A program made the position numbers and the translations under genes. The notes beneath the pieces are model-generated. The model did no database searches. It was not told the DNA's origin and saw nothing but the letters and a program-made list of their open reading frames with translations. Shown piece after piece: positions 4,642 to 55,931 of a stretch of DNA of 64,000 nucleotides. Numbering within the stretch: the stretch's first letter is position 1; each line of letters starts with the position of its first letter. The stretch lies in the sequence record NC_061444.1; one strand, written 5' to 3'.

Positions 4642-5667
4642 TTATTCCTCCAATACTCCGCTAATCTCCGAGAACATATTTTTGTACACTAAGGAACCAT
4701 CCAGCTTGTCCAGTCTATCAACGAGAACATACAGTCTGGGTGACGTGCGAATATTAGTCCACGTCTTCTCATTACGATCAAGTCCACCAAGTGTCGGGAC
4801 AATGACTATGCTGAGATTTTTGTTTGCCCTGACGAAGCCTACGTCGATGTGCTTCCTGTTTATACTCCTGAACAGCCTGTTGATTGCGTCCAAACCTACA
4901 GGCCGATTAAATTCCGTATCACTGACTGTATTGACTAAGCTGATGAGTATCCCTTTGTCCTTACCTTCGATCTCAAACAACGCAGCTTTCAGGTCAGCAA
5001 CCGTCGAAGCAGAGAAGTATGAAACATCGTGGTTATAGTCCTTGAGACAACTGCCGAGCGCACGGGCAGATTCGATATGCGCAGCATTGTCATCTCTAAG
5101 GATATACACAGGAGCGTCTGCTTGGTAAGTCCGAGCAGCCATGAGATTGATAAGATCACAAGAGGGCTTGCCTACTGTGGCTAAGCCCTTATTTGCAATG
5201 AAAAACTTATCTTTGTACACATCGTAAATGTTTGGTGGCATGTACTTCATGTAATCATCGTCCAGACTAAGAATCATTCGAGGCTTAGTTAACTGGACGA
5301 CGAGTTGCATACTGCGAAGTGATGCCCTATATTCCGTATCAGATAAAACTCGACTAATCGGAAGGTATTGTACGACAACGAATCGGTCATCAATCGAATC
5401 GACAACCGAACGTATGAGCGTACTGCCTAGCGAGGGACCGGCAGAGAATTGGGTAACGAGCATCAAGCTATCTTCAACTAAGCCTTTAGACTCTGACAGC
5501 GTGATACCGTTACCCGTTTGCTTTACCGAACGCTCCCACGTTATTGTGGGGTCGTCTCGCTGATCGGCATGTACATCAATTGCGCTACACCAGAGACAGG
5601 CTCCAAGAATGTAAGCAGCAATACGTTGTCTGGATCTGCTTCTGCCGGGTTGACGGTTTCCGGCCAT
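4642..5667 (-). CDS. Exported protein resembling type I periplasmic-binding / ABC substrate-binding-like sensor domains
   Basis: Signal-peptide-like N-terminus (RQRIAAYILGACLWCSAIDVHA); KPRMILSLDDDYMKY and VYILRDD...STVADLKAALFEI resemble ABC_sub_bind-type domains (recognition by eye). Confidence 0.5.
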   Translation of the reverse strand: MAGNRQPGRSRSRQRIAAYILGACLWCSAIDVHADQRDDPTITWERSVKQTGNGITLSESKGLVEDSLMLVTQFSAGPSLGSTLIRSVVDSIDDRFVVVQYLPISRVLSDTEYRASLRSMQLVVQLTKPRMILSLDDDYMKYMPPNIYDVYKDKFFIANKGLATVGKPSCDLINLMAARTYQADAPVYILRDDNAAHIESARALGSCLKDYNHDVSYFSASTVADLKAALFEIEGKDKGILISLVNTVSDTEFNRPVGLDAINRLFRSINRKHIDVGFVRANKNLSIVIVPTLGGLDRNEKTWTNIRTSPRLYVLVDRLDKLDGSLVYKNMFSEISGVLEE

Positions 5668-6365
5668 AGGACTTCTCCTCTCTCGTCAGTGACGTAAGGA
5701 ATGCCTGCCCCTTTGCCCAATCCATGACGCAAAGCCCATACTGTGTCGGCATTCTCTTGCACAAACACAAGCCCTTTAACCGTTGCCTCGCCAGTCGCGT
5801 TTTCCAGTGCAGTGACGCGCGAAGTAAGTAACTGTGCGTCAGACTGAATAGTTCGAATCGCAGCGAGGTTCGAGTTAACGCGCTGGTTCATGTTGTTAAA
5901 CATGGTGAAGAACGAGTTGTTCATCGCCGTGCGAACGCCGTCCGTATAGGACTTAGGAATCAGCTCATCGTTGTCAAACGTTGTCACGCCTGTACGAACG
6001 AGAACTTTACCGGTAAGACGTCCACCACTTGCGCTGATAATCTGAGGCGCTGGCAAATCAGCTTCGTCCCAGACTTGAACAGTGGTCATCACCGTGTTGT
6101 AGTCAGTCTCTTCCTGCCACGTATTTTTGTACGGAGCAGTAGCAGTCTTAGACTTACGGCGCAGAACTTTTTTATAGTTAGCGCTCGTGCCGTCTGCGAT
6201 AATCCAGAGACCGTTCAGTGGAAAGACATGCGTAACAGGTTCGGCGAACGCTAAGATGATCATAACGTCTGCGCTTACCTTGTACACGATATTGTTCGAC
6301 GCTGACAGACCTTGCTGCTGGGCAAGACTAATCAACGTGTCCACGTAGTTAGTCAACTGGCTCAT
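5541..6365 (-). CDS. Virion structural protein with C-terminal W-x-x-x-HGLG domain
   Basis: 274 aa; short coiled coil then VWALRHGLG...EVLWP domain paralogous to 723..1319. Confidence 0.7.
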   Translation of the reverse strand: MSQLTNYVDTLISLAQQQGLSASNNIVYKVSADVMIILAFAEPVTHVFPLNGLWIIADGTSANYKKVLRRKSKTATAPYKNTWQEETDYNTVMTTVQVWDEADLPAPQIISASGGRLTGKVLVRTGVTTFDNDELIPKSYTDGVRTAMNNSFFTMFNNMNQRVNSNLAAIRTIQSDAQLLTSRVTALENATGEATVKGLVFVQENADTVWALRHGLGKGAGIPYVTDERGEVLWPETVNPAEADPDNVLLLTFLEPVSGVAQLMYMPISETTPQ

Positions 6366-20800: not shown

Positions 20801-22351
20801 GACAGGAGTGACTTCACCGAACACCGCATAGATAGAAGTCAGATAGTCAGAACGCATGACCTTAGACTTCAAAACGTTCTCTACGATTTCGGTATGCTCG
20901 CTGGTGGTACGCGCCTGAGCAGTACCCAGCTTTGACGTTCCATCGTTGTAGGTAACAGCATACTTGAGCGCAATCTCTTCGCCTTGTGGCACTTCGTCAT
21001 CAATGATGATACGCAGTTCAGTAGGCACTAGGTCCTTAACGCTACGATTAACATCGAACTCCTGCGTCTTGGTCATATCAAACTGACCTTGAAACGCAAC
21101 GCTGATATCGATCTTCGAGTCAGCATCGACGCTAGGCAGATTGAGAGTCGTACCGTTGAACGTACCGAGAGTAGCAGACAGCGCAATCATACCGCTATCG
21201 GTCAGCTCTTTCGTCGAACCTGTAGCAAGATACTTACCGTACACACGGACTTTCGCACTCGCATTACCGTACAGCGTAGGGCATTCAATAACAAGCTCGT
21301 CAGGGTCAGGCTCAACACCCATAGGATAGATGCGCGACTCAAGCGCTTGCTGTGTGCCATTGTAGGACAGCGTGAGATTGATAACAGAGATCGCAAGAGG
21401 CTCATTGAAGCGCACTGCATTACCGTCACGCTCTGCAATCCACGAACTGTCTTCTACCCACACTTCGACCGTCTGCTCGGTATTATCGCTGTAACGGATA
21501 ACAGCACCGAACGTCGTCCACTCACCGCCACGAATGAACTCAGGTTGAATGAACGCGATAGACTTCTGCAAAGGTGCACCAACGATGAAGCGTCTAACAG
21601 GCTCGACAACAACGTGCGCACCTAGATACAGTTTAGCACTCAGGTTGATTGCGGCATAAACACCTTCGAGGACTTCTTCGATAGGCGCCCACTGATAGAA
21701 CAGGTCTGCGATGCGACGATAGAACATAGCAGAACGCGCAGTGTACTGTTGGATATCGTTGTTGACAGGCTCAAACCCTATGTGGTTATTGAACCAGTCT
21801 TCTGCTTCTTGCTGCGTCATGCCTACTTCTTGCAGCGCATTAACAACATCCTTCTCGGCGTCTTTTGTGATCGTCAGATCAAGACCACCATCAATCAGTT
21901 GCGCGTCAACTTCGAGGTTAACCTTGTTCGACTTGTACCACGTACCGCCATCTTGGATAAGAGTACCAAGAGGAGTAGGCACAAACGTTTGATAGTCAGC
22001 AGTGTATAAGCGAGAGGCATCGAACTGACCACCTAACAACATGCTCACAAATCGAGGCCACTGAGTTGTACCAGATACTTGCTGCCAGTCAGGTAAGCAG
22101 TCGATAACACGTTTCAATGTCGGCAAACGATACTGCATCAGGTCGCGCGTGATGTTGATACCGAGCTGGCGAATACTCGCTTCGGCCAGCTCGTCGTTTG
22201 AATCCGCATTGATGCGACGAATGTTTAACAGTTGCTTGATTGTCTCAAGGTTCTGCTCGTCGTTGTGTGCATCGAGTATCTCGAACAACTCTGCCCATGC
22301 TTCGTTGGCTTCAATGAAGTCAATGTTAAAGGCTAGAGTGTTTGATTTCAC
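17816..22351 (-). CDS. Large baseplate wedge / fibre-network protein with tandem Ig-like domains (1511 aa)
   Basis: Follows the baseplate J-like gene; N-terminal wedge-like domain then repeated Y-x-DG(S/T) Ig-like modules. Confidence 0.65.
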   Translation of the reverse strand: MKSNTLAFNIDFIEANEAWAELFEILDAHNDEQNLETIKQLLNIRRINADSNDELAEASIRQLGINITRDLMQYRLPTLKRVIDCLPDWQQVSGTTQWPRFVSMLLGGQFDASRLYTADYQTFVPTPLGTLIQDGGTWYKSNKVNLEVDAQLIDGGLDLTITKDAEKDVVNALQEVGMTQQEAEDWFNNHIGFEPVNNDIQQYTARSAMFYRRIADLFYQWAPIEEVLEGVYAAINLSAKLYLGAHVVVEPVRRFIVGAPLQKSIAFIQPEFIRGGEWTTFGAVIRYSDNTEQTVEVWVEDSSWIAERDGNAVRFNEPLAISVINLTLSYNGTQQALESRIYPMGVEPDPDELVIECPTLYGNASAKVRVYGKYLATGSTKELTDSGMIALSATLGTFNGTTLNLPSVDADSKIDISVAFQGQFDMTKTQEFDVNRSVKDLVPTELRIIIDDEVPQGEEIALKYAVTYNDGTSKLGTAQARTTSEHTEIVENVLKSKVMRSDYLTSIYAVFGEVTPVEAVKQVVMKAPDIKLATIDLVVPETVVERDIIRPKAMALYVLTSATQAQIDARDPSIVVAYTEVFGIWFSSEDKATSVSAIPRVDTQTGEFEAPLVSGDAVKYALNFTFIDGSSTVTFNRIILVNDTIMIPKSVDLRSSPTISSGSTLMLPVVCLWNNGLSYAAAAAVKVEYIPSASAIEEARQRTIRLQQQAVEQGQDPSQFDPDHPDYARWVTLTVSLSNNTVYDPIMGRSVKEYVLYYQGDLHGSARISMEYEFEGTHLTNYRDLQLIPTRSLVDSITIECPDLMYEKSRTFVRLLATYADGSQEYVTAAEWVGNWPDKETDEYKFLQFSPGRYSGIAVVEIVEGRTPIDYKDFRAMNISKLPMFNAIGSIADLNKAYFDGAILQTGKSKYDYDTATQVIASFFRVSNKIDLTVSPQPKQSINNIVNSRIEGATQISADVLSESYTLVNTYKTGGIVRTLDGSYAEDTPKTFDLEVDSEWTVLNNYYVQPGPNNTQMLVPTTDIVAEIDAEGSLTPRQNVNGAVLIRARYSCDQYQIEKTLLVYLVQANTYLRSIGITGPDVVWDVSDRNPTIGYENGRWYVPFDLRVIIDPDAEIITTDAIWSIGDETNVDGVSIDPLNGHLFIGQSQLSDGVINLVAVFTKQNPESLADETITGTRTIQLQTQNTILNGYIENPPGNISPNTDYRFTAFYTRRSGATGSSRLPDANSVEFQWNVIESVSGFTLAQDGTFRFPASKDPQKVKVECIITEQRTTISLVQEITCPGIGFPQDLTVGGYTNVRDDSSMQMNALLGRTGTFVKDDVSAKCLWQITNSKGDVVDVQGITINAQTGRLTIASLLNDTDFGVKAIYIEGQQTLTQTHFMKAMSSYPRFGVAPFGITGVSIALAQLPTRLRSKTGGQFVLSTKQDEYGYFVVRQSYGQAVFSAAADSTGTVNKGWQGFDGAQWPVTGDNGKKGPIVGKVVYDNLTENVLIYRTNARAFGSSVITVRYQ

Positions 22352-23811
22352 TGGTTCATCTTCCTTTCGCTATACAGGATGTTGATGCGAAGGTTACGCA
22401 GCGCAACGTATTCGAGAATCGTGTTAGGAATGATATCCTGAACAGGGCTTTCGATGTTGCAGTAGTCTACTTCCGGACGACGCACAGGGTTATCAGGGTC
22501 TGTCCAGTCGTACAGTACACGGTCCATGATATCAGACAGCGCAAGACGTTTACCAAGCATTCCCGGACGACGCTCAAACAGTTTAAGCACGGACTGTTCG
22601 AGTGTAGCCTGATTCGACTCACGGTTGCCTGGAGCATCAGCATACAGAGACACATTCAAGATGCAGTCAATCTGTAGCTTATCAGGGTTCCACGATTGCA
22701 CATCGAGAGGGCTGTTGAACTGTGCAAGCCAGTTAAGGAACTTACTCCACTGGGCAGAAGTAGGGTTAGGGTTGATGCCGCCCCACGTGCTCGTATTGCG
22801 AGGAAGTACGCACACACGAACAACACCCTGCCACTCTTTATCGTTAGGTGCAATCTCTGCCTGTCCTTGAACGATAACGTCAGCAACATCAGGGTAAAGC
22901 GCAATAGCAGCTTTCCACTCGTCACGGCGAATCAGCTTCTTGCGGCTACGGCCAACGATTGGTGCGTAGTTGCGATAGTAGGCAACAGGCGTTTCATCAG
23001 AGCCGCCGAGAATCGCGCTGACTGTTTTACCCTGTAGCTGAGGGTTAGACAAGCACTGCACCTTCAGGCCGATACTGTCTGTGTTGCCACTAGCGCCAAG
23101 AGACTTAATGCCTTGCACTTTCAGCGTATAGCCTGCTGGTGGCTGTGCCCCCCACTGCTCACCGCCAAACTGAATCTCAACGTCACCGTCATCGGTTGTT
23201 ACGTCAAGGAAGATTTGCTGATCAGCATATGCTTCAAACAGACACTTAGTGAAACGCTGGAACTCAATCTTCGTGCCAGTAGGATGTTCGAACCAGACAC
23301 GCAGATCATCAGTCAGTTGGAAGTTGCTTGTGCCCAAACGAATCGACATGTAATCGACAGTGTTAGGTACAATCTGGCTGAACGTAAACACTTCACCGAT
23401 AATGAAGTCAACGTTCTTCACTTCGCCGGGTTCCCACTGCGTAACGTCAGCAAGCAACGCATTGAAGTTACCGATAGTGAATGGCGTGTACTTATCGTAT
23501 GACTGTTTCACCGAAGTCAGATTGACAACGGAGGCAGTCACGGTAGATACAGATTTGCGTCCTATATCTACACCCAAGTAGCGGGCGTTAGCGAGTACGG
23601 ACGAGTTACGTCGTGCCAGCCTACTGAATGCTTCACGCGCTGCAATCAAAGACGCATAGGCGTTCGTCACACCGAGATCACCGAGCGCATCAGCAAGTAA
23701 CGCAGTCAATGAACTGACCTGTGCGTCTGTCCAGTAGCTGGACTTGTTAATACGATTCAGGAAGTCTTGTGCAAACTCCTCATGAGTCGTGTATGTATTA
23801 AGCATGGACAT
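22348..23811 (-). CDS. Baseplate wedge protein, T4 gp6 / baseplate J-like
   Basis: 487 aa; AAREAFSRLARRNSSVLANARYLG, IQFGGEQWGAQP, GGSDETP motifs; position after gp25-like gene. Confidence 0.8.
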   Translation of the reverse strand: MSMLNTYTTHEEFAQDFLNRINKSSYWTDAQVSSLTALLADALGDLGVTNAYASLIAAREAFSRLARRNSSVLANARYLGVDIGRKSVSTVTASVVNLTSVKQSYDKYTPFTIGNFNALLADVTQWEPGEVKNVDFIIGEVFTFSQIVPNTVDYMSIRLGTSNFQLTDDLRVWFEHPTGTKIEFQRFTKCLFEAYADQQIFLDVTTDDGDVEIQFGGEQWGAQPPAGYTLKVQGIKSLGASGNTDSIGLKVQCLSNPQLQGKTVSAILGGSDETPVAYYRNYAPIVGRSRKKLIRRDEWKAAIALYPDVADVIVQGQAEIAPNDKEWQGVVRVCVLPRNTSTWGGINPNPTSAQWSKFLNWLAQFNSPLDVQSWNPDKLQIDCILNVSLYADAPGNRESNQATLEQSVLKLFERRPGMLGKRLALSDIMDRVLYDWTDPDNPVRRPEVDYCNIESPVQDIIPNTILEYVALRNLRINILYSERKMNQ

Positions 23812-23812
23812 G

Positions 23813-24235
23813 TTACTGTGCCCTCATTGCAAACGTAATGGATTGTTTGTCTTCGAGCTTAGGACAACGCCATGTGATTACACACACGTAGGTCTGCTCG
23901 TATTGTTCGCTCATGGTACACGCTGTCTGCACACCAGTTACATCTTGCGTCAGACCATTGTATGGGTCTTCGAGTGCGAGGCGCATGTACGTTGCAATCC
24001 AGTCTGCTGTAGTCTGGTCGAACGGTTCAAAGAGATATTGATACACGTCTGCACCGAAGTTCTCACGCCACTTACGGGACTTCTTGCGCGTACCAATTAC
24101 CATCAGAATCTTCTGGACAATGCTGTCCATGTTCTGAACGTTATCGCGGGGTTCGAGTTGAATCCACGCATTGATATCACAATAGATGCGCTCACTAGTG
24201 GGCACGTCTATCAGTCGAACTCCGATTCCTGCCAT
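23813..24235 (-). CDS. Baseplate wedge subunit, gp25-like
   Basis: 140 aa; IVQKILMVIGTRKKSRKWRENFGADVYQYLFEP fits the gp25 signature. Confidence 0.85.
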   Translation of the reverse strand: MAGIGVRLIDVPTSERIYCDINAWIQLEPRDNVQNMDSIVQKILMVIGTRKKSRKWRENFGADVYQYLFEPFDQTTADWIATYMRLALEDPYNGLTQDVTGVQTACTMSEQYEQTYVCVITWRCPKLEDKQSITFAMRAQ

Positions 24236-24525
24236 TAGCCAAATCTCACGTTAGAGCTGCCGTTAGAAGCAGTGTCACCACAACTGTTTGGGTCACCAGC
24301 TCGCTGGGCAGGCTTGCCATTGACACGCACACTGGAGCCTGAGATAGCTGTACCTGTATGAGGTGGCTTCTTCGGTTTCCAATGTGGCTTGTACTTATCG
24401 CCGTTACGAACACTGCCTTTGCCATTCACGAACACGTTAGACGATGCTTGTGCCGGAACAACAGGGAAGTAACCGTTATGTCCAGTAGAAAGGTCAGTGC
24501 CTAGACGAATAGCTTTCTGTCCCAT
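24235..24525 (-). CDS. PAAR spike-tip protein (T4 gp5.4-like)
   Basis: MGQKAIRLGTDLSTGH...VFVNGKGSVRNGD...VRVNGKPAQRAGD; ATG at 24525 with AGAGGAGA RBS. Confidence 0.9.
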   Translation of the reverse strand: MGQKAIRLGTDLSTGHNGYFPVVPAQASSNVFVNGKGSVRNGDKYKPHWKPKKPPHTGTAISGSSVRVNGKPAQRAGDPNSCGDTASNGSSNVRFG

Positions 24526-24575
24526 GATATTCTCCTCTGTTAGGCACAAATTAGCTTGTTATGCAGTAGAAACGA

Positions 24576-24604
24576 AAACGGGCGACCCGAAGGCCACCCG
24601 CTTT
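24576..24604 (-). terminator. Rho-independent terminator of the small structured RNA
   Basis: Minus strand GCGGGTGGCC-TTCG-GGTCGCCCGT-TTTCGTTTCT. Confidence 0.85.
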
Positions 24605-24804
24605 CTATGCTTGGATTTGTGTCGCTTACTCCCTCACACCCGAAGCGAGTGCCCGGTAGCCGAAGCTACTAAGCTGGAGTGACTGACCGAGAGTGAAGCC
24701 GCATCAAACGGCAACTGTAAGTGACTCTCGGAACATGATAGCAAACGACCAAGCATCGCAATTGCTATCAGCGACACGTAGAACAAAATCATGTTTGCTC
24801 CTTG
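24605..24804 (-). ncRNA. Putative compact multi-stem, pseudoknotted RNA of unknown class
   Basis: Three perfect 8-bp stems (GTGTCGCT/AGCGACAC, GATAGCAA/TTGCTATC, CCGAGAGT/ACTCTCGG), a cUUCGg hairpin, an 8-bp loop-to-tail pairing (ATGCTTGG/CCAAGCAT), own promoter and terminator; G.U pairs favour the minus strand. Confidence 0.7.
24634..24792 (-). CDS. Possible 52-aa hydrophobic peptide encoded inside the structured RNA
   Basis: AAGGAG RBS 5 nt before ATG; MILFYVSLIAIAMLGRLLSCSESHLQLPFDAASLSVSHSSLVASATGHSLRV; below the ORF-track length cut-off. Confidence 0.35.
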   Translation of the reverse strand: MILFYVSLIAIAMLGRLLSCSESHLQLPFDAASLSVSHSSLVASATGHSLRV

Positions 24805-24811
24805 TGTCTCT

Positions 24812-24840
24812 ACTGTAAGTAAAACATTTGCAAATGTCGA
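24812..24840 (-). promoter_or_regulatory. Sigma70-like promoter with a 14-bp palindrome across the spacer
   Basis: TCGACA-N17-TACAGT on the minus strand; perfect palindrome ACATTTGCAAATGT at 24824-24837. Confidence 0.55.
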
Positions 24841-24849
24841 TCAAGTTAC

Positions 24850-25810
24850 TTCGAGTTGCCCTTCGCCCAACATCACTAGGGTTTCAACTCTCTTTCTCTC
24901 TTTACCGCCTGGGCTGCGGAAACCGCACACAAGAACAACACATCAAGGACACACGGCGGAAAAGTGAAAAAGTTCCGTATGCCCTAACAGCATCGCTCAA
25001 GCGAAGGAGGTGACCCATCGGTGATCTGCGGTGGTTGATACACTCTTTAACAATCGCTCTTGTTGTGCATTAGATCGTGGTAGGAACGCGATTGACCGCT
25101 AACAAGTCCTATACGATATTTCACTACCCGGAAAAGTGGGCAAGCTATGGCAGCACGTCAACGGCAGCATGGCGCGGACACACTCCATTGAACATTGTTA
25201 AGGGCAATGCTCAACAGGCTGTGTACAGCTTTGACCAAACGCAGAGTCGCTCGTCGCCCAACATCACTTGAGTATCTCGTCTACGTTCTTTTACTCCCTA
25301 GATACCGTGAAAAGGCACGGCACCCATGAGGGTCGCGGATGTTTATCACATTAAGACTCTTACAGTTCAATCCTGTACGCAGTGTGTTGAGTCGTCCGCT
25401 GGATGACACACTACATACCCTCACCGTGTTGTACATCGGTAGGAAAGAGCTGGTGGAATTGTCATGGAGAGTAGATATCTCCCCAATGCACACTGTTATT
25501 GCCAGCCAGTGTGCATCAGGCAGCGTAACTGCGAACTGCTGTCCCTAAAAGAGTGGCCACAACGCTGAGAATACGTTCTACCAGTCTACGTGCCTAGAGG
25601 CTGCTGCCGTGCTATGTCGTAAAGATGAAAAGAACTGGGCCTTGTGGGCGTCAGCGGCAGAGCAACAGTCTATCACGTGGGTGCCGGGGTTGTCCTCACG
25701 ATTACAGAGCATAAGCTCAAACCGGCTGGAGGCTCACATGCCGCCAAGAAATACAGCGCGTGAGTTTATGGACCAGCAAGAGACTGCCCGCGAAGTAAGT
25801 CTCTTGCTAC
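24850..25810 (+). ncRNA. Putative large (~950 nt) structured RNA of unknown class
   Basis: No convincing CDS; more than a dozen hairpins and long-range helices, including 10- and 11-bp perfect stems; G.U pairs mostly favour the plus strand. Confidence 0.55.
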
Positions 25811-25848
25811 AACTTGATATTACTATCTGCAATTTTTATTTACAGATT

Positions 25849-27612
25849 TTAAAACGCTTTACGTTCGATATTCGAATATAAAGTTTCATACGGCTCAGAG
25901 TACAGTTCAGGACCGCGTTGAGCGCGTACAGTCACGTAACCAGTGTGACGGTTGAAGTCAGTGATTTCGACTGTAGGCTGTTTAGGCTTGAGAGTCGCAT
26001 AAATAGGAGCGTTCAGAGTTGGTTCGTCTGTCTGAATCTTATTTACAGATTGCAGAGCAGCGCCTGAAAGCGTAGGCAGCTTGAATCGCAGTTCAGCACG
26101 TTTCTGTCCGAACGCTGCGCGAATCATACCGTTTTCCAGCTTCACACCGTTCTGCTTGAGATATGCAGCGATGCGACGACCGATACCCGTAAGCTGATCG
26201 CGAGTGCGTGGGTCGAACGTACCTTCGAAGCTGATTGCTTCTTCCGGTTGACGTACAGACAGATGCAGACCTGTGTTGAAGTAACCTTCGGTCAGAAGAC
26301 GAAGCACTTCTTTGACAACCTCTTTCGTGTTCTGATTGATAGCAGCAACACGCAGCTCAGGCACGTCTACTTTGATCGGGTCACGCAGTTCGGTCTGGTT
26401 GTCCATGTAGCCGAGTGAAATGTGTTTCGCATTGGCATACGTATGCTGCAACACACCAGTAGCGCGAATCAACACAGAGCCGCCTTTAGCGAGGTCATAC
26501 AGTTCATCGCTGGTGGTTGTGCTGAACAGATAGTAGTCTGTAGGCACTGCCATGCGATTAACAGCTTCAACCGCTTTCGTCTGCGCTTCTTTCACAGTCT
26601 TACCGAAGACAACACGACTACGGTTAGGCTGAGAGGCAGACACAGGGAAGAACGCACCGTAAACAGCCTGCACGTTTTTCTTAATAGGCTGATCAGAAGC
26701 AATCTTCTTACCGCCAGCGAGCGGAGGCAGCTTAACGCCCACCAGCTTACCTTTGACGATATGCTTGTTTTCTTTAACAGGCTTGAGACTGTCGATCAGC
26801 TTAGACAGTGACGCACCATCGAGAATCTTCTCAAGCGGAACAACAAGGTTCTGCGGCAGATAGTGTTTCTTGCGATACGTGTAGATAACGGTGTCTTTCT
26901 TGACCTGCAAAGGCGTAGCCATATTGCGACCAACAACACCGACAGGCTGGAACGTGTTTGCTCTGTCGTTAGCGATTGAGCCAAACTGTTTAGTGAACTC
27001 AGTCTGACCGATGATGTTAGCGACACGCAGATGACCACGAACGATAAACACAATCTTCGGTTCATCTTTCAGGCGCAACTCGTAGCGGTCACGGTTCAGA
27101 TAAACCAGGCTGTACTTGTCGCCCTTCTCCAGCTCAAGGTCATACTCGTCGTTAGCGTCATCGACAACGACTTTCTTACCCTGATACGTAGCGTAAGTGC
27201 GAGCACCGGCAGACTCAGAAGCGATCTGCATTGCCTTACCGGTATTAGATAGCGATGCAGCGAAGTCACGCACGGCTGGCATCAGGTCGAATGAAGACGC
27301 TACAGAATACGGTTCGCGCTTATCGCCAAGATGCAGATGCACGGCGCTTGTGCTGGACATGAAGACTGTTGTACCTACATCTTCGTGCTTACCAGCAAAG
27401 TTCAGGCCGCTGATACGTTCGATGGTATTCGCATTCAGTGATTCGAAGCGTACATCGCTACCAGCAGCGAAGTCAAAGATTTCACCGTGACGCCAAGCAT
27501 AGGCAACGTTGCTGGAGCTAAGGCCAACAAACGCATCGCCAATTCGGCTGACGGTTAACGGCATGATACTCAGATCACGAATGATCGAGGACTGCTTTTT
27601 AATGAGGTTCAT
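25849..27612 (-). CDS. Hypothetical protein, candidate internal head protein (587 aa)
   Basis: Contains the ~65-aa domain shared with three other ORFs (TYATYQGKKV...KGDKYSL), preceded by SES-A. Confidence 0.7.
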   Translation of the reverse strand: MNLIKKQSSIIRDLSIMPLTVSRIGDAFVGLSSSNVAYAWRHGEIFDFAAGSDVRFESLNANTIERISGLNFAGKHEDVGTTVFMSSTSAVHLHLGDKREPYSVASSFDLMPAVRDFAASLSNTGKAMQIASESAGARTYATYQGKKVVVDDANDEYDLELEKGDKYSLVYLNRDRYELRLKDEPKIVFIVRGHLRVANIIGQTEFTKQFGSIANDRANTFQPVGVVGRNMATPLQVKKDTVIYTYRKKHYLPQNLVVPLEKILDGASLSKLIDSLKPVKENKHIVKGKLVGVKLPPLAGGKKIASDQPIKKNVQAVYGAFFPVSASQPNRSRVVFGKTVKEAQTKAVEAVNRMAVPTDYYLFSTTTSDELYDLAKGGSVLIRATGVLQHTYANAKHISLGYMDNQTELRDPIKVDVPELRVAAINQNTKEVVKEVLRLLTEGYFNTGLHLSVRQPEEAISFEGTFDPRTRDQLTGIGRRIAAYLKQNGVKLENGMIRAAFGQKRAELRFKLPTLSGAALQSVNKIQTDEPTLNAPIYATLKPKQPTVEITDFNRHTGYVTVRAQRGPELYSEPYETLYSNIERKAF

Positions 27613-27620
27613 ATAAATCC

Positions 27621-28055
27621 CTAATACGAAACAATGCGGAAGGCGTTCTGCTTGAGCAGGTTAAGATTGCCCAGCATCAAGCTGTACGCAAGAGTACCGT
27701 GCTGTTCGAGCAGACTGTCAGGTACAAGTGACCCGAAGTAAAGCGCTTTGTCTGGTCGAGTGTTAATCTCTTCGCCGGTAGACTTCATTGCGTCAGGGAC
27801 AACGAAGCACCACGGTTCAGCAACGTATTTACCTTTGACGTACTGAATCCTATAGCCAACAGCCATGTGCTGGCCTTTGGTTGGGCGATACGAAAAAACA
27901 TCCGTGTTCTGATTACGCGACTTGCGAACAGAGAACAACGACATGGTTAAAAATCGCTGTTCGAACTGTGGGATGAACGCGTTGTCTTCGCAAATCTTTT
28001 TCAGTACCGCCTCCTGTCGAGCTTTTGGCATCGACGAGAACAGGCTTAAATTCAT
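27621..28055 (-). CDS. Hypothetical protein (144 aa)
   Basis: Tightly packed ORF in the operon. Confidence 0.65.
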   Translation of the reverse strand: MNLSLFSSMPKARQEAVLKKICEDNAFIPQFEQRFLTMSLFSVRKSRNQNTDVFSYRPTKGQHMAVGYRIQYVKGKYVAEPWCFVVPDAMKSTGEEINTRPDKALYFGSLVPDSLLEQHGTLAYSLMLGNLNLLKQNAFRIVSY

Positions 28056-28666
28056 GACAGTCTGGCGAGAATTTGACGAACAACATCAGACACTGAATTG
28101 ACCTCAGTGTCGATAACCAGATCGAAACCACCAGGCACTTCAAGGTAGCGTTGGTTGTATTGCTCGTACACTTCTTTGGTCTGACGCTTCTCGATACGGT
28201 CTTCACCGCCGATACGAATCTTCCTGCGTTCAATGGAAGTTTCATAGCTACACGTCAGCAGCACGGTCAGACGATTCTCAGGAGCGAGTGCTTCCCAAGT
28301 ATGCTGATAGATGTGCGCGTTAACGTCAGACTCACCTGCCTGATAGACATAGGTGGATGGGTAGCCTCGGTCAGCGATGATGATCGTGTTAGGTTCGTTA
28401 GCGAGAATGCGCTCATACGCAGTCATCGTCGAGGAACGTGCAGCAAGGAACAGCAGCAGTTCGGTTCGAGGGTCCATATCCTCATTAAGAGGATTCGAGT
28501 TGGACAGCAGAACGTCACGGATGTGCTCGGCCAAAGGCGTACCTCCAGGCTCACGTAAGCGCAGAGTATTAATACCGCGTTGCGTCAGTATCTCAGACAG
28601 AGCAGTACATACGGTAGACTTACCGCCACCTTCACCGCCTTCAATTAAAACATAGGTTGGTTTCAT
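28052..28666 (-). CDS. tmk: Thymidylate kinase
   Basis: P-loop IEGGEGGGKST, REPGGT, ELLLFLAAR and ADRGYPSTYVYQ motifs. Confidence 0.95.
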   Translation of the reverse strand: MKPTYVLIEGGEGGGKSTVCTALSEILTQRGINTLRLREPGGTPLAEHIRDVLLSNSNPLNEDMDPRTELLLFLAARSSTMTAYERILANEPNTIIIADRGYPSTYVYQAGESDVNAHIYQHTWEALAPENRLTVLLTCSYETSIERRKIRIGGEDRIEKRQTKEVYEQYNQRYLEVPGGFDLVIDTEVNSVSDVVRQILARLS

Positions 28667-55904: not shown

Positions 55905-55931
55905 TCGTCATTAACACTGGTATTTACAGTG

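Follow-up and report, generated by a model that had tools for sequence, protein, structure and literature searches.

Few large, intricately folded noncoding RNAs are known, most of them without a known function, and OLE, ROOL and GOLLD have proved to form unexpected assemblies. In OLE, a large bacterial RNA whose gene adjoins that of a small membrane protein, a kink-turn (K-turn) serves as the dock for the protein OapC (PMC9723947). In a K-turn, tandem G.A and A.G pairs close off a bulge of 3 nt (PMC1874613), and a K-loop occurs in archaeal box C'/D' motifs, for which the box consensus is RUGAUGA...CUGA (PMC3001065). A 64,000-nt stretch of sequence record NC_061444.1 (hereafter the window) comes from the Erwinia jumbo phage pEa_SNUABM_32, an Alexandravirus of 266 kb, with which the region is 100% identical. 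In this window two hairpins present the same 15-nt loop, TCGCCCAACATCACT on the plus strand, and both lie in a gap of ~1.3 kb (24526-25848) between two minus-strand genes.

A single 28-nt module accounts for both hairpins, which are paralogs within an RNA of ~1 kb that was previously undescribed, although large ornate phage RNAs (GOLLD, ROOL) and K-turn docks (OLE) are kinds already known. Rfam and literature searches found no description of this RNA, which at least 46 sequenced jumbo phages that infect plant pathogens carry without annotation; some of these phages are under development for fire-blight biocontrol. As the best explanation overall we tentatively favor that the twin modules are rigid, structure-specific docking elements in a ~1.03-kb RNA read from the minus strand.

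A duplicated 28-nt module

The 15-mer occurs exactly twice in the 64 kb, at 24863-24877 (copy 1) and 25254-25268 (copy 2), with no further matches at up to two mismatches, and two matches arose by chance in none of 100 shuffles. Hairpin 1 (24853-24890, minus strand; supported by covariation, a covariance model and folding) is made up of an outer stem GAGUUG/CAACUC, a 3-nt A-rich bulge AAA, an inner stem CCCU/AGGG and the 15-nt loop, and its 28-nt core spans 24858-24885. Hairpin 2 (25237-25288, minus strand; covariation and covariance model) has an 8-bp outer stem, an internal loop CGAG/CGAC followed by a bulge AUA, and an inner stem CUC/GAG with a flanking A.C below the 15-nt loop; its core occupies 25249-25276. 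In an alignment of homologous regions from 13-19 phages (pairwise identity 53-99%), the copy-1 inner stem appears on the plus strand as GCCCT/AGGGT, GCCAT/ATGGT, GCTCG/TGAGT or GCCCG/TGGGT, and the outer stem as GAGTTG/CAACTC, GAATTG/CAATTC, GAATCG/CGATTC or GTTCTG/CAGAAC. Two-sided changes affect 8 of the 10 pairs of copy 1, with 94% of cells paired and a covariation score of 0.56 against at most 0.19 for slid controls. The corresponding values for copy 2 are 7 of 12 pairs, 91.5% and 0.37 against at most 0.07, and for neither copy did any of 500 shuffles score as high. The compensatory changes in both stems, drawn from 12 related lineages, indicate that the hairpins with their conserved loops are real, and the original prediction of one 15-mer displayed by two hairpins, with the stems as drawn, is thereby borne out.

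That prediction also took the two stems to be unrelated, which the relatives contradict. In SNUABM_22, Alexandra, SNUABM_35 and SNUABM_39, the inner stem of copy 1 is the one that copy 2 has in the window, GCTCG/TGAGT, or differs from it by one base; SNUABM_22 goes further, with two identical 28-mers. GGNRGUAAARGA stands ahead of both copies. A 28-nt covariance model finds exactly two sites in the window, at 48.6 bits (copy 1) and 47.4 bits (copy 2), and BLAST places the module at this locus only, no more than twice per genome. The identical 28-mers, the common preceding sequence and the single covariance model and locus together identify the hairpins as paralogs, spaced ~390 nt apart. On the minus strand the shared module reads 5'-G AWA CYCN AGUGAWGUYGGGCGA NGRG C-3', that is, a G-C pair, an invariant A-rich 3-nt bulge, a 4-bp stem and the 15-nt loop. 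An alternative inner hairpin (minus strand; CUCAA/UUGGG around a GUGAUG hexaloop) is the minimum free energy (MFE) fold of copy 2, but SNUABM_17, SNUABM_45 and others compensate the originally drawn stem instead. A site acting at the DNA level (operator, pac or ori) was rejected in view of the compensatory and wobble changes in the stems and of the enrichment of the stretch in RNA libraries.

How constant is the loop itself? Among 12 lineages with a whole-region identity of 53-93%, 13 of the 15 positions are invariant in copy 2, the more constrained copy, and copy 1 changes only at central positions; the conservation in relatives that the original prediction looked for is thus present. Numbered on the minus strand, variation is seen at positions 6 (U/A), 9 (U/C) and, in the X16 relative, 7 (G/A), all of them central, while the loop ends AGUGA and GGGCGA are nearly invariant. 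The two copies vary independently, as in SNUABM_1, where copy 1 has AAGUC and copy 2 AUGUU. Nearly constant ends around a variable center fit an interaction of the loop ends with each other and do not fit a linear antisense seed.

Strand, extent and expression of the RNA

On which strand is this RNA read? The original prediction wrote the loop as plus-strand RNA, but the RNA is very probably read from the minus strand, and the displayed loop is then AGUGAUGUUGGGCGA. Twenty-one helices were set by Watson-Crick covariation alone, a criterion blind to strand. Their wobble-type exceptions are A.C in 47 cells against G.T in 14, and helix by helix 13 lean to minus and 3 to plus; since a plus-letter A.C is a G.U on the minus strand, the excess of A.C favors minus. 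A similar bias (162 minus vs 61 plus) is found in the 216 pairs common to the RNAalifold structures of both strands. Single-sequence folds made independently of any alignment are better conserved on the minus strand for all three reference sequences. Pairs of the window's MFE fold are kept in relatives at 84% on minus vs 75% on plus (slid controls, 37-42%), and those with two-sided changes number 165 vs 90. The terminator, the Shine-Dalgarno (SD) sequence with its small open reading frame (ORF), and the promoter-like motif described below all lie on the minus strand. Adapter remnants at both ends of a contig from metatranscriptome run X16 place read 1 on the plus strand, and in most stranded libraries read 1 on the plus strand corresponds to a minus-strand RNA; this adds weak evidence for minus.

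Two observations speak for plus. All instances of copy 2, and copy 1 in three lineages, close the loop with a pair that reads A.C on minus but G.U on plus, and the folding-energy z-score is -1.97 for minus vs -2.73 for plus, better for plus, a measure that does not separate the strands. The contigs from the RNA runs are undirected, so that the transcribed strand is not read directly. A plus-strand RNA would show the loop UCGCCCAACAUCACU closed by G.U pairs, and AAGGAGGUGA on that strand would be a strong SD. Set against this are the wobble asymmetry in all three counts, the read-1 orientation (itself weak evidence) and the minus-strand setting of the neighboring genes, small ORF, terminator and promoter motif; no plus-strand promoter, terminator or conserved ORF was found in the region. 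We therefore consider a plus-strand RNA highly improbable.

The structured, ORF-free body of the RNA occupies ~1.03 kb of the minus strand (24804-25830) and holds both modules, as judged from the alignment, covarying helices and RNA depth. Consensus folds place many covarying helices across the whole gap, in several domains. With more than 500 nt, no conserved ORF, at least 21 covarying helices, a distribution over several genera and presence in RNA runs, it belongs among the large ornate noncoding RNAs, a descriptive class and not a homology family. In 46 phage records a gap of this length separates the same pair of genes; its identity is 70-89% within Alexandravirus, and in Sasquatchvirus Y3 and the SNUABM_45 group it is alignable over about one third only. 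Conservation of the RNA extends from Alexandravirus to Sasquatchvirus, the SNUABM_45 group and the more distant contig L052, the one new lineage returned by an IMG/VR scan; Y3 keeps the RNA with diverged modules. The part that holds up best between genera, GCUCUGUAAUCGUGAGGA...GCACCCACGUGAU, lies in a 5' domain (25544-25801), and a metagenome scan with this conserved 5' core gave 0 matches.

Comparison with known families gave no relatives. Rfam 15 (including GOLLD, ROOL, OLE, group I and II introns, RNase P, tmRNA and 6S) has no matches in the 64 kb at gathering thresholds, and at E <=10 over 24400-26000 there are only four chance matches to microRNA models, in one hairpin. No tRNA or tmRNA was detected, nor any similarity to Escherichia coli genomes or plasmids. 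The RNA body contains no conserved ORF, the small 52-aa ORF being the only one in the gap. Neither BLAST nor the covariance model detects RNA body or module in the more distantly related phages Yoloswag, SNUABM_5, JA13 and JA29, which keep the promoter motif and the terminator/PAAR leader; the small ORF is found in Yoloswag and SNUABM_5. Yoloswag, JA13 and JA29 have ORF-free stretches of their own, 0.65-1.0 kb long and without detectable similarity, after the same promoter motif (L034:4374-5085, L036:4377-5113 and 5424-6117, L037:4377-5380), and these may hold unrelated structured RNAs. Short coding sequences (CDS) annotated as "hypothetical protein" lie inside the RNA in the window (25738-25881, plus strand) and in relatives (L003:1193-1342, L008:1298-1774, L011:1033-1194). 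They differ between genomes and are not conserved, and are probably spurious gene calls over noncoding RNA.

The stretch is present, and enriched over its flanking genes, in two metatranscriptome runs (X16 and X20). Contigs of four metatranscriptome runs were mapped onto 22300-28200. In X16 the word depth is 40-139 over 24676-25801 and 0-4 on the flanking genes, i.e., 10-30 times deeper, and in X20 only pieces of this same stretch were found. Coverage in X12, a run that may contain phage DNA, is nearly even and about two-fold higher over the RNA; X18 has nothing on the mapped interval. One X16 contig (24676-25500) bridges the junction of RNA body and small ORF, and the 5' domain is ~3.5 times deeper in X16 than the rest. 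Contig ends bearing adapter lie at ~24673 and ~25500 and may mark processing sites. Near-identical copies of 24550-25850 occur in DNA and RNA runs (X1-X20) labeled as money, tobacco, manure, straw, food-fermentation and wastewater metagenomes, and papers on the gut virome, slugs and the rhizosphere mention Alexandravirus as well. Unless the runs are contaminated, the phages, or at least this stretch, seem very widespread.

Read along the minus strand, the locus would comprise a promoter-like motif (25848-25837), ~1.03 kb of folded RNA with the modules, an SD with the 52-aa ORF, a terminator and the PAAR gene. It is strongly indicated that the RNA starts at the promoter-like motif after the 587-aa gene, runs into the small ORF and ends at the terminator before PAAR. 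The motif, AATCTGTAAATA, lies within a 33-nt element (25816-25848, minus strand) that directly follows the stop codon of the 587-aa gene and is invariant in all lineages. It recurs between the 587-aa gene and the PAAR gene, before small genes, in Yoloswag, SNUABM_5, JA13 and JA29, and one Yoloswag copy stands ~35 nt upstream of the small ORF. An exact second copy is found at 26040-26051 (minus strand), in the 3' part of the 587-aa gene and ~200 nt upstream of the first. The related CTGTAAATA has four sites in the window, all four on the coding strand, among them 55921-55929 (minus strand), ~35 nt upstream of the gene start at 55929. Both motifs bear what we take to be a resemblance to T4 late promoters (TATAAATA), and AATCTGTAAATA is a putative phage promoter.

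The small ORF (24634-24792, minus strand) encodes 52 aa with a hydrophobic N-terminus, MILFYVSLIAIAMLGRLLS..., in a conserved frame. The stop codon keeps its position in 12 of 13 lineages, and the indels measure 3, 12 or 15 nt. In the N-terminal half the entropy at second codon positions is 0.24, vs 0.57 and 0.64 at the other positions, a periodicity found in none of the control stretches of the RNA. MILFYVSLIAIAMLGRLLS recurs in annotated ORFs of Yoloswag (gp109) and SNUABM_5 as MLVFFWMLVVVCLLGR... and MLAFILSLLAVCLLGK..., each the last hydrophobic ORF before the PAAR gene. The "neighboring small RNA" of the original prediction is accordingly most likely the coding region of this ORF. It is unannotated in the pEa_SNUABM_32 record and annotated in few relatives only, and it has no PHROG match. 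In its C-terminal half RNA-compensatory changes occur with the reading frame kept. The SD AAGGAG (24798-24803, minus strand; sequence and consensus fold) lies 5 nt upstream of the AUG, within a conserved local hairpin (GGAGCAAA/UUUGUUCU). Downstream, a scan identifies an intrinsic terminator (24574-24605, minus strand), a G.U-containing stem followed by a U tract, which is conserved and has minus-specific wobble pairs.

The RNA also contains UCACCUCCUU (25004-25013, minus strand; plus strand AAGGAGGTGA), a sequence equal to the 3' tail of 16S rRNA (1532-1541), the anti-Shine-Dalgarno. Neither strand's consensus fold pairs this segment, and Alexandravirus, the SNUABM_45 group and L052 all retain it, unlike Y3. 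It could pair with the SD of the small ORF; no covariation between the two was seen. Shared 10-mers with rRNA are not above chance here, and the loop shares 8 nt with 23S rRNA (1056-1063) and with 16S rRNA (1082-1089). Mimicry of, or complementarity to, rRNA was set aside, the longest shared words being 11-12 nt, as expected from shuffled sequence.

On one side the gap is bordered by the PAAR baseplate-spike gene (24235-24525, minus strand) and on the other by the 587-aa gene (25849-27612, minus strand). The 587-aa protein contains a KMPT-N domain (PF20294, E 1.6e-18), falls in a PHROG of unknown function and is kept down to 41% identity in Salmondvirus. Upstream of it are genes for a 144-aa protein without an assigned family and for thymidylate kinase; downstream of the RNA are the PAAR spike and baseplate wedge genes. 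These neighbors are all on the minus strand, and their protein families offer no RNA-related clue.

Possible roles of the modules

If the RNA is minus-sense, the module contains, in order from the Watson-Crick stem (CCCU/AGGG), AGU, GA, eight bases, and a GA abutting the stem. AGU would be the 3-nt bulge of a K-turn, and the GA of GUGAUG would form tandem G.A/A.G pairs with the GA of GCGA beside the stem. The second helix of the K-turn would be replaced by the loop, giving a K-loop of the box C'/D' type, with the invariant A-rich bulge below as a second bend. The stem expected as the Watson-Crick C-helix of a K-turn is present, and CYCN/NGRG covaries (CG to UA and AU; UA to AU). AGU is invariant in all 24 module instances, its pairing state being ambiguous (G2-C13 and U3.G12 are possible), and the bases of the tandem pairs are kept in 24/24 (G4), 23/24 (A5), 24/24 (A15) and 21/24 (G14). 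By eye, the equivalent hairpin of contig L052, which the covariance model does not match, appears with GGU-GAUG...CGA beside an A-U stem and with the loop interior replaced. A K-loop is for us the leading structural hypothesis and not a finding, a reading we hold only tentatively.

A number of observations weigh against the K-loop. G14 is A in three copy-1 instances (SNUABM_3, SNUABM_39), which weakens one of the G.A pairs, and the pair beside the bulge is A.C in all instances of copy 2 and, for copy 1, in three lineages. An alternative local fold (G2-C13 and U3.G12, leaving an 8-nt loop) fits the G12-to-A changes, and Y3 is without the GA...GA pattern. Chance would produce such a pattern in roughly 1 of 256 hairpin families, and dozens of hairpins are present in this RNA; the K-loop is read from a sequence pattern only. 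No K-turn binders of the L7Ae type are known from enterobacteria.

With or without a kink, what could a twin display of this kind be for? The docking role that we infer would have the two modules bind two molecules, or a dimer, of one putative protein encoded by phage or host; less likely, they would make equivalent tertiary contacts. In either case they would organize the large RNA, which might be a stable noncoding RNA, the leader of the small ORF, or both. The claim of a presented recognition element thus survives, in that a constant loop is carried on compensating stems; its plus strand, the supposed unrelatedness of the stems and the partner proposed for it do not.

A reading compatible with docking is that the 1-kb RNA in its entirety acts in cis as leader of the small ORF. 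The modules would then be operators for a translational regulator, and the SD would stay hidden, in its local hairpin or behind the upstream CCUCCUU, until released by a factor or by processing. Compared with Yoloswag, where the promoter motif stands ~35 nt upstream of the homologous small ORF, the RNA here lies between promoter and ORF, and one RNA contig extends from the leader over most of the ORF. A conserved hairpin holds the SD and AUG, and the SD-complementary CCUCCUU is exposed within the leader. The SD and anti-SD do not covary, however, and the latter is not kept in Y3; 1 kb is far beyond what is needed to hide the SD of a 52-codon gene, and the greater depth of the 5' domain in X16 suggests a separately stable RNA. 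A leader function is possible on this evidence, and we lean against it.

The loops might instead engage in protein-free RNA-RNA contacts, either long-range tertiary contacts or contacts that build multimers as in ROOL, GOLLD and OLE. The RNA's size, its several domains and its many covarying helices speak for this, as do the RNA-only multimers formed by large phage-associated natural RNAs (PMC12286853). Invariant GGGC and AGUGA could pair with invariant partners and so leave no covariation. The best internal complements, AAUAUCA (25821) and AACAUC (25343), are 6-7 nt long and both invariant. Both target the variable loop center, however, and stay unchanged where the loop changes (U6 to A, U9 to C). 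The two loops, being identical and not self-complementary, cannot kiss each other, and no partner rises above chance. Contacts of this sort are rather unlikely to be what the loops are kept for.

The original prediction offered an antisense seed as well as a protein-binding or sponge site; as seeds or sponge sites the loops would pair with an RNA acting in trans, for instance the apex of a "P2" hairpin in the neighboring small RNA or a host or phage mRNA. An exposed stretch of 15 nt, conserved and present twice, invites this reading, and because Dickeya phage AD1 shares these loops with the Erwinia phages any partner would have to be conserved or phage-encoded. The loop center nevertheless varies, independently in the two copies, and no alignment columns covary with its A/T positions. 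Complements in either orientation are limited in the window to 9-10-mers at 6 sites, vs ~3.4 expected, i.e., at chance level; neither the host genome nor the other 200 kb of the phage was searched. The proposed apex, GCGAUGCUUGGUCG, is the minus-strand sequence 24748-24761. If the modules are minus-sense it lies on the same strand as they do and is a look-alike of the loop, not a complement. Its own bases pair with each other (GCGAU/GUCGU, enclosing a GCUUG pentaloop), and SNUABM_1 compensates one of these pairs from C-G to U-A. It encodes the residues AMLGR in the hydrophobic helix of the small ORF, and it does not change in those phages in which the loops have T in place of A. Its resemblance to GUGAUGUUGGGCGA raised it as a third loop copy, a possibility rejected in view of its own stem with the compensatory change and its position in the small ORF. 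Two sites are too few for a sponge, and antisense or sponge action is very unlikely.

Comparison with described RNAs

Repeated identical hairpin loops in one noncoding RNA recall the CsrB/RsmB sponges. Those carry many repeats, whereas here there are exactly two modules per genome, the loop core is GGG, with GGA in two lineages only, and the stems and bulge are constrained in sequence, so that conservation covers a structured unit of 28 nt, where the sponges have a short loop motif. Type I toxin mRNAs (hok/sok-like) and phage leaders that sequester the ribosome-binding site share with this locus a gene for a small hydrophobic peptide, its SD and start buried, downstream of a folded leader. The leader here is several times longer, and the ORF is conserved beside a baseplate-spike gene in five phage genera.

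ROOL and GOLLD are likewise long, folded, abundant phage-borne noncoding RNAs of unknown function (PMC12286853, PMC5737381). The present RNA matches none of their Rfam models, belongs to jumbo phages with Enterobacterales hosts and is encoded in a baseplate cluster, not beside tRNAs. OLE with OapA, OapB and OapC, from the Bacillota, resembles it in being a large structured RNA beside the gene of a small hydrophobic protein and in having a K-turn-type dock, which is putative here. The two differ in sequence and in the Rfam covariance model, in the phage genome, and in size (~1 kb vs ~0.6 kb); the 52-aa ORF is unrelated to OapA as far as tested, and a ribonucleoprotein (RNP) at a membrane is conjectural in the present case. 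As a speculation that we think improbable, the 1-kb RNA could assemble via its two K-loop-like modules into an RNP, possibly together with the small membrane peptide encoded downstream, as an independent OLE/OapA-like arrangement. Such a particle could act during infection in membrane- or baseplate-linked processes, or in translational takeover via the anti-Shine-Dalgarno. The duplicated 28-nt module, the probable promoter and terminator, the adjacent conserved micro-protein and culturable phage-host pairs provide experimental handles on these questions.

The closest comparison for the module itself is with K-turns and K-loops. The differences are that the D-like box is GCGA, not CUGA, and that the loop interior UUGGGC is itself conserved; that the stem pair beside the bulge is often A.C and one tandem G is A in three instances; and that the module is without guide sequences, in a bacterial host without a known L7Ae homolog, with a three-dimensional kink that is predicted only. 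As in a K-turn, a Watson-Crick stem is followed by three bases on the 5' strand (unpaired in K-turns) and GA, and a 3'-strand GA abuts the stem; GUGAUG...CGA is similar to boxes C (RUGAUGA) and D (CUGA), and a loop closes the non-canonical side, which is also the case in the K-loops of archaea (PMC3001065, PMC1874613). A binder of the twin modules would offer a direct entry to the function of this RNA, and would also test K-turn-type docking in phages of bacteria without classical K-turn proteins.

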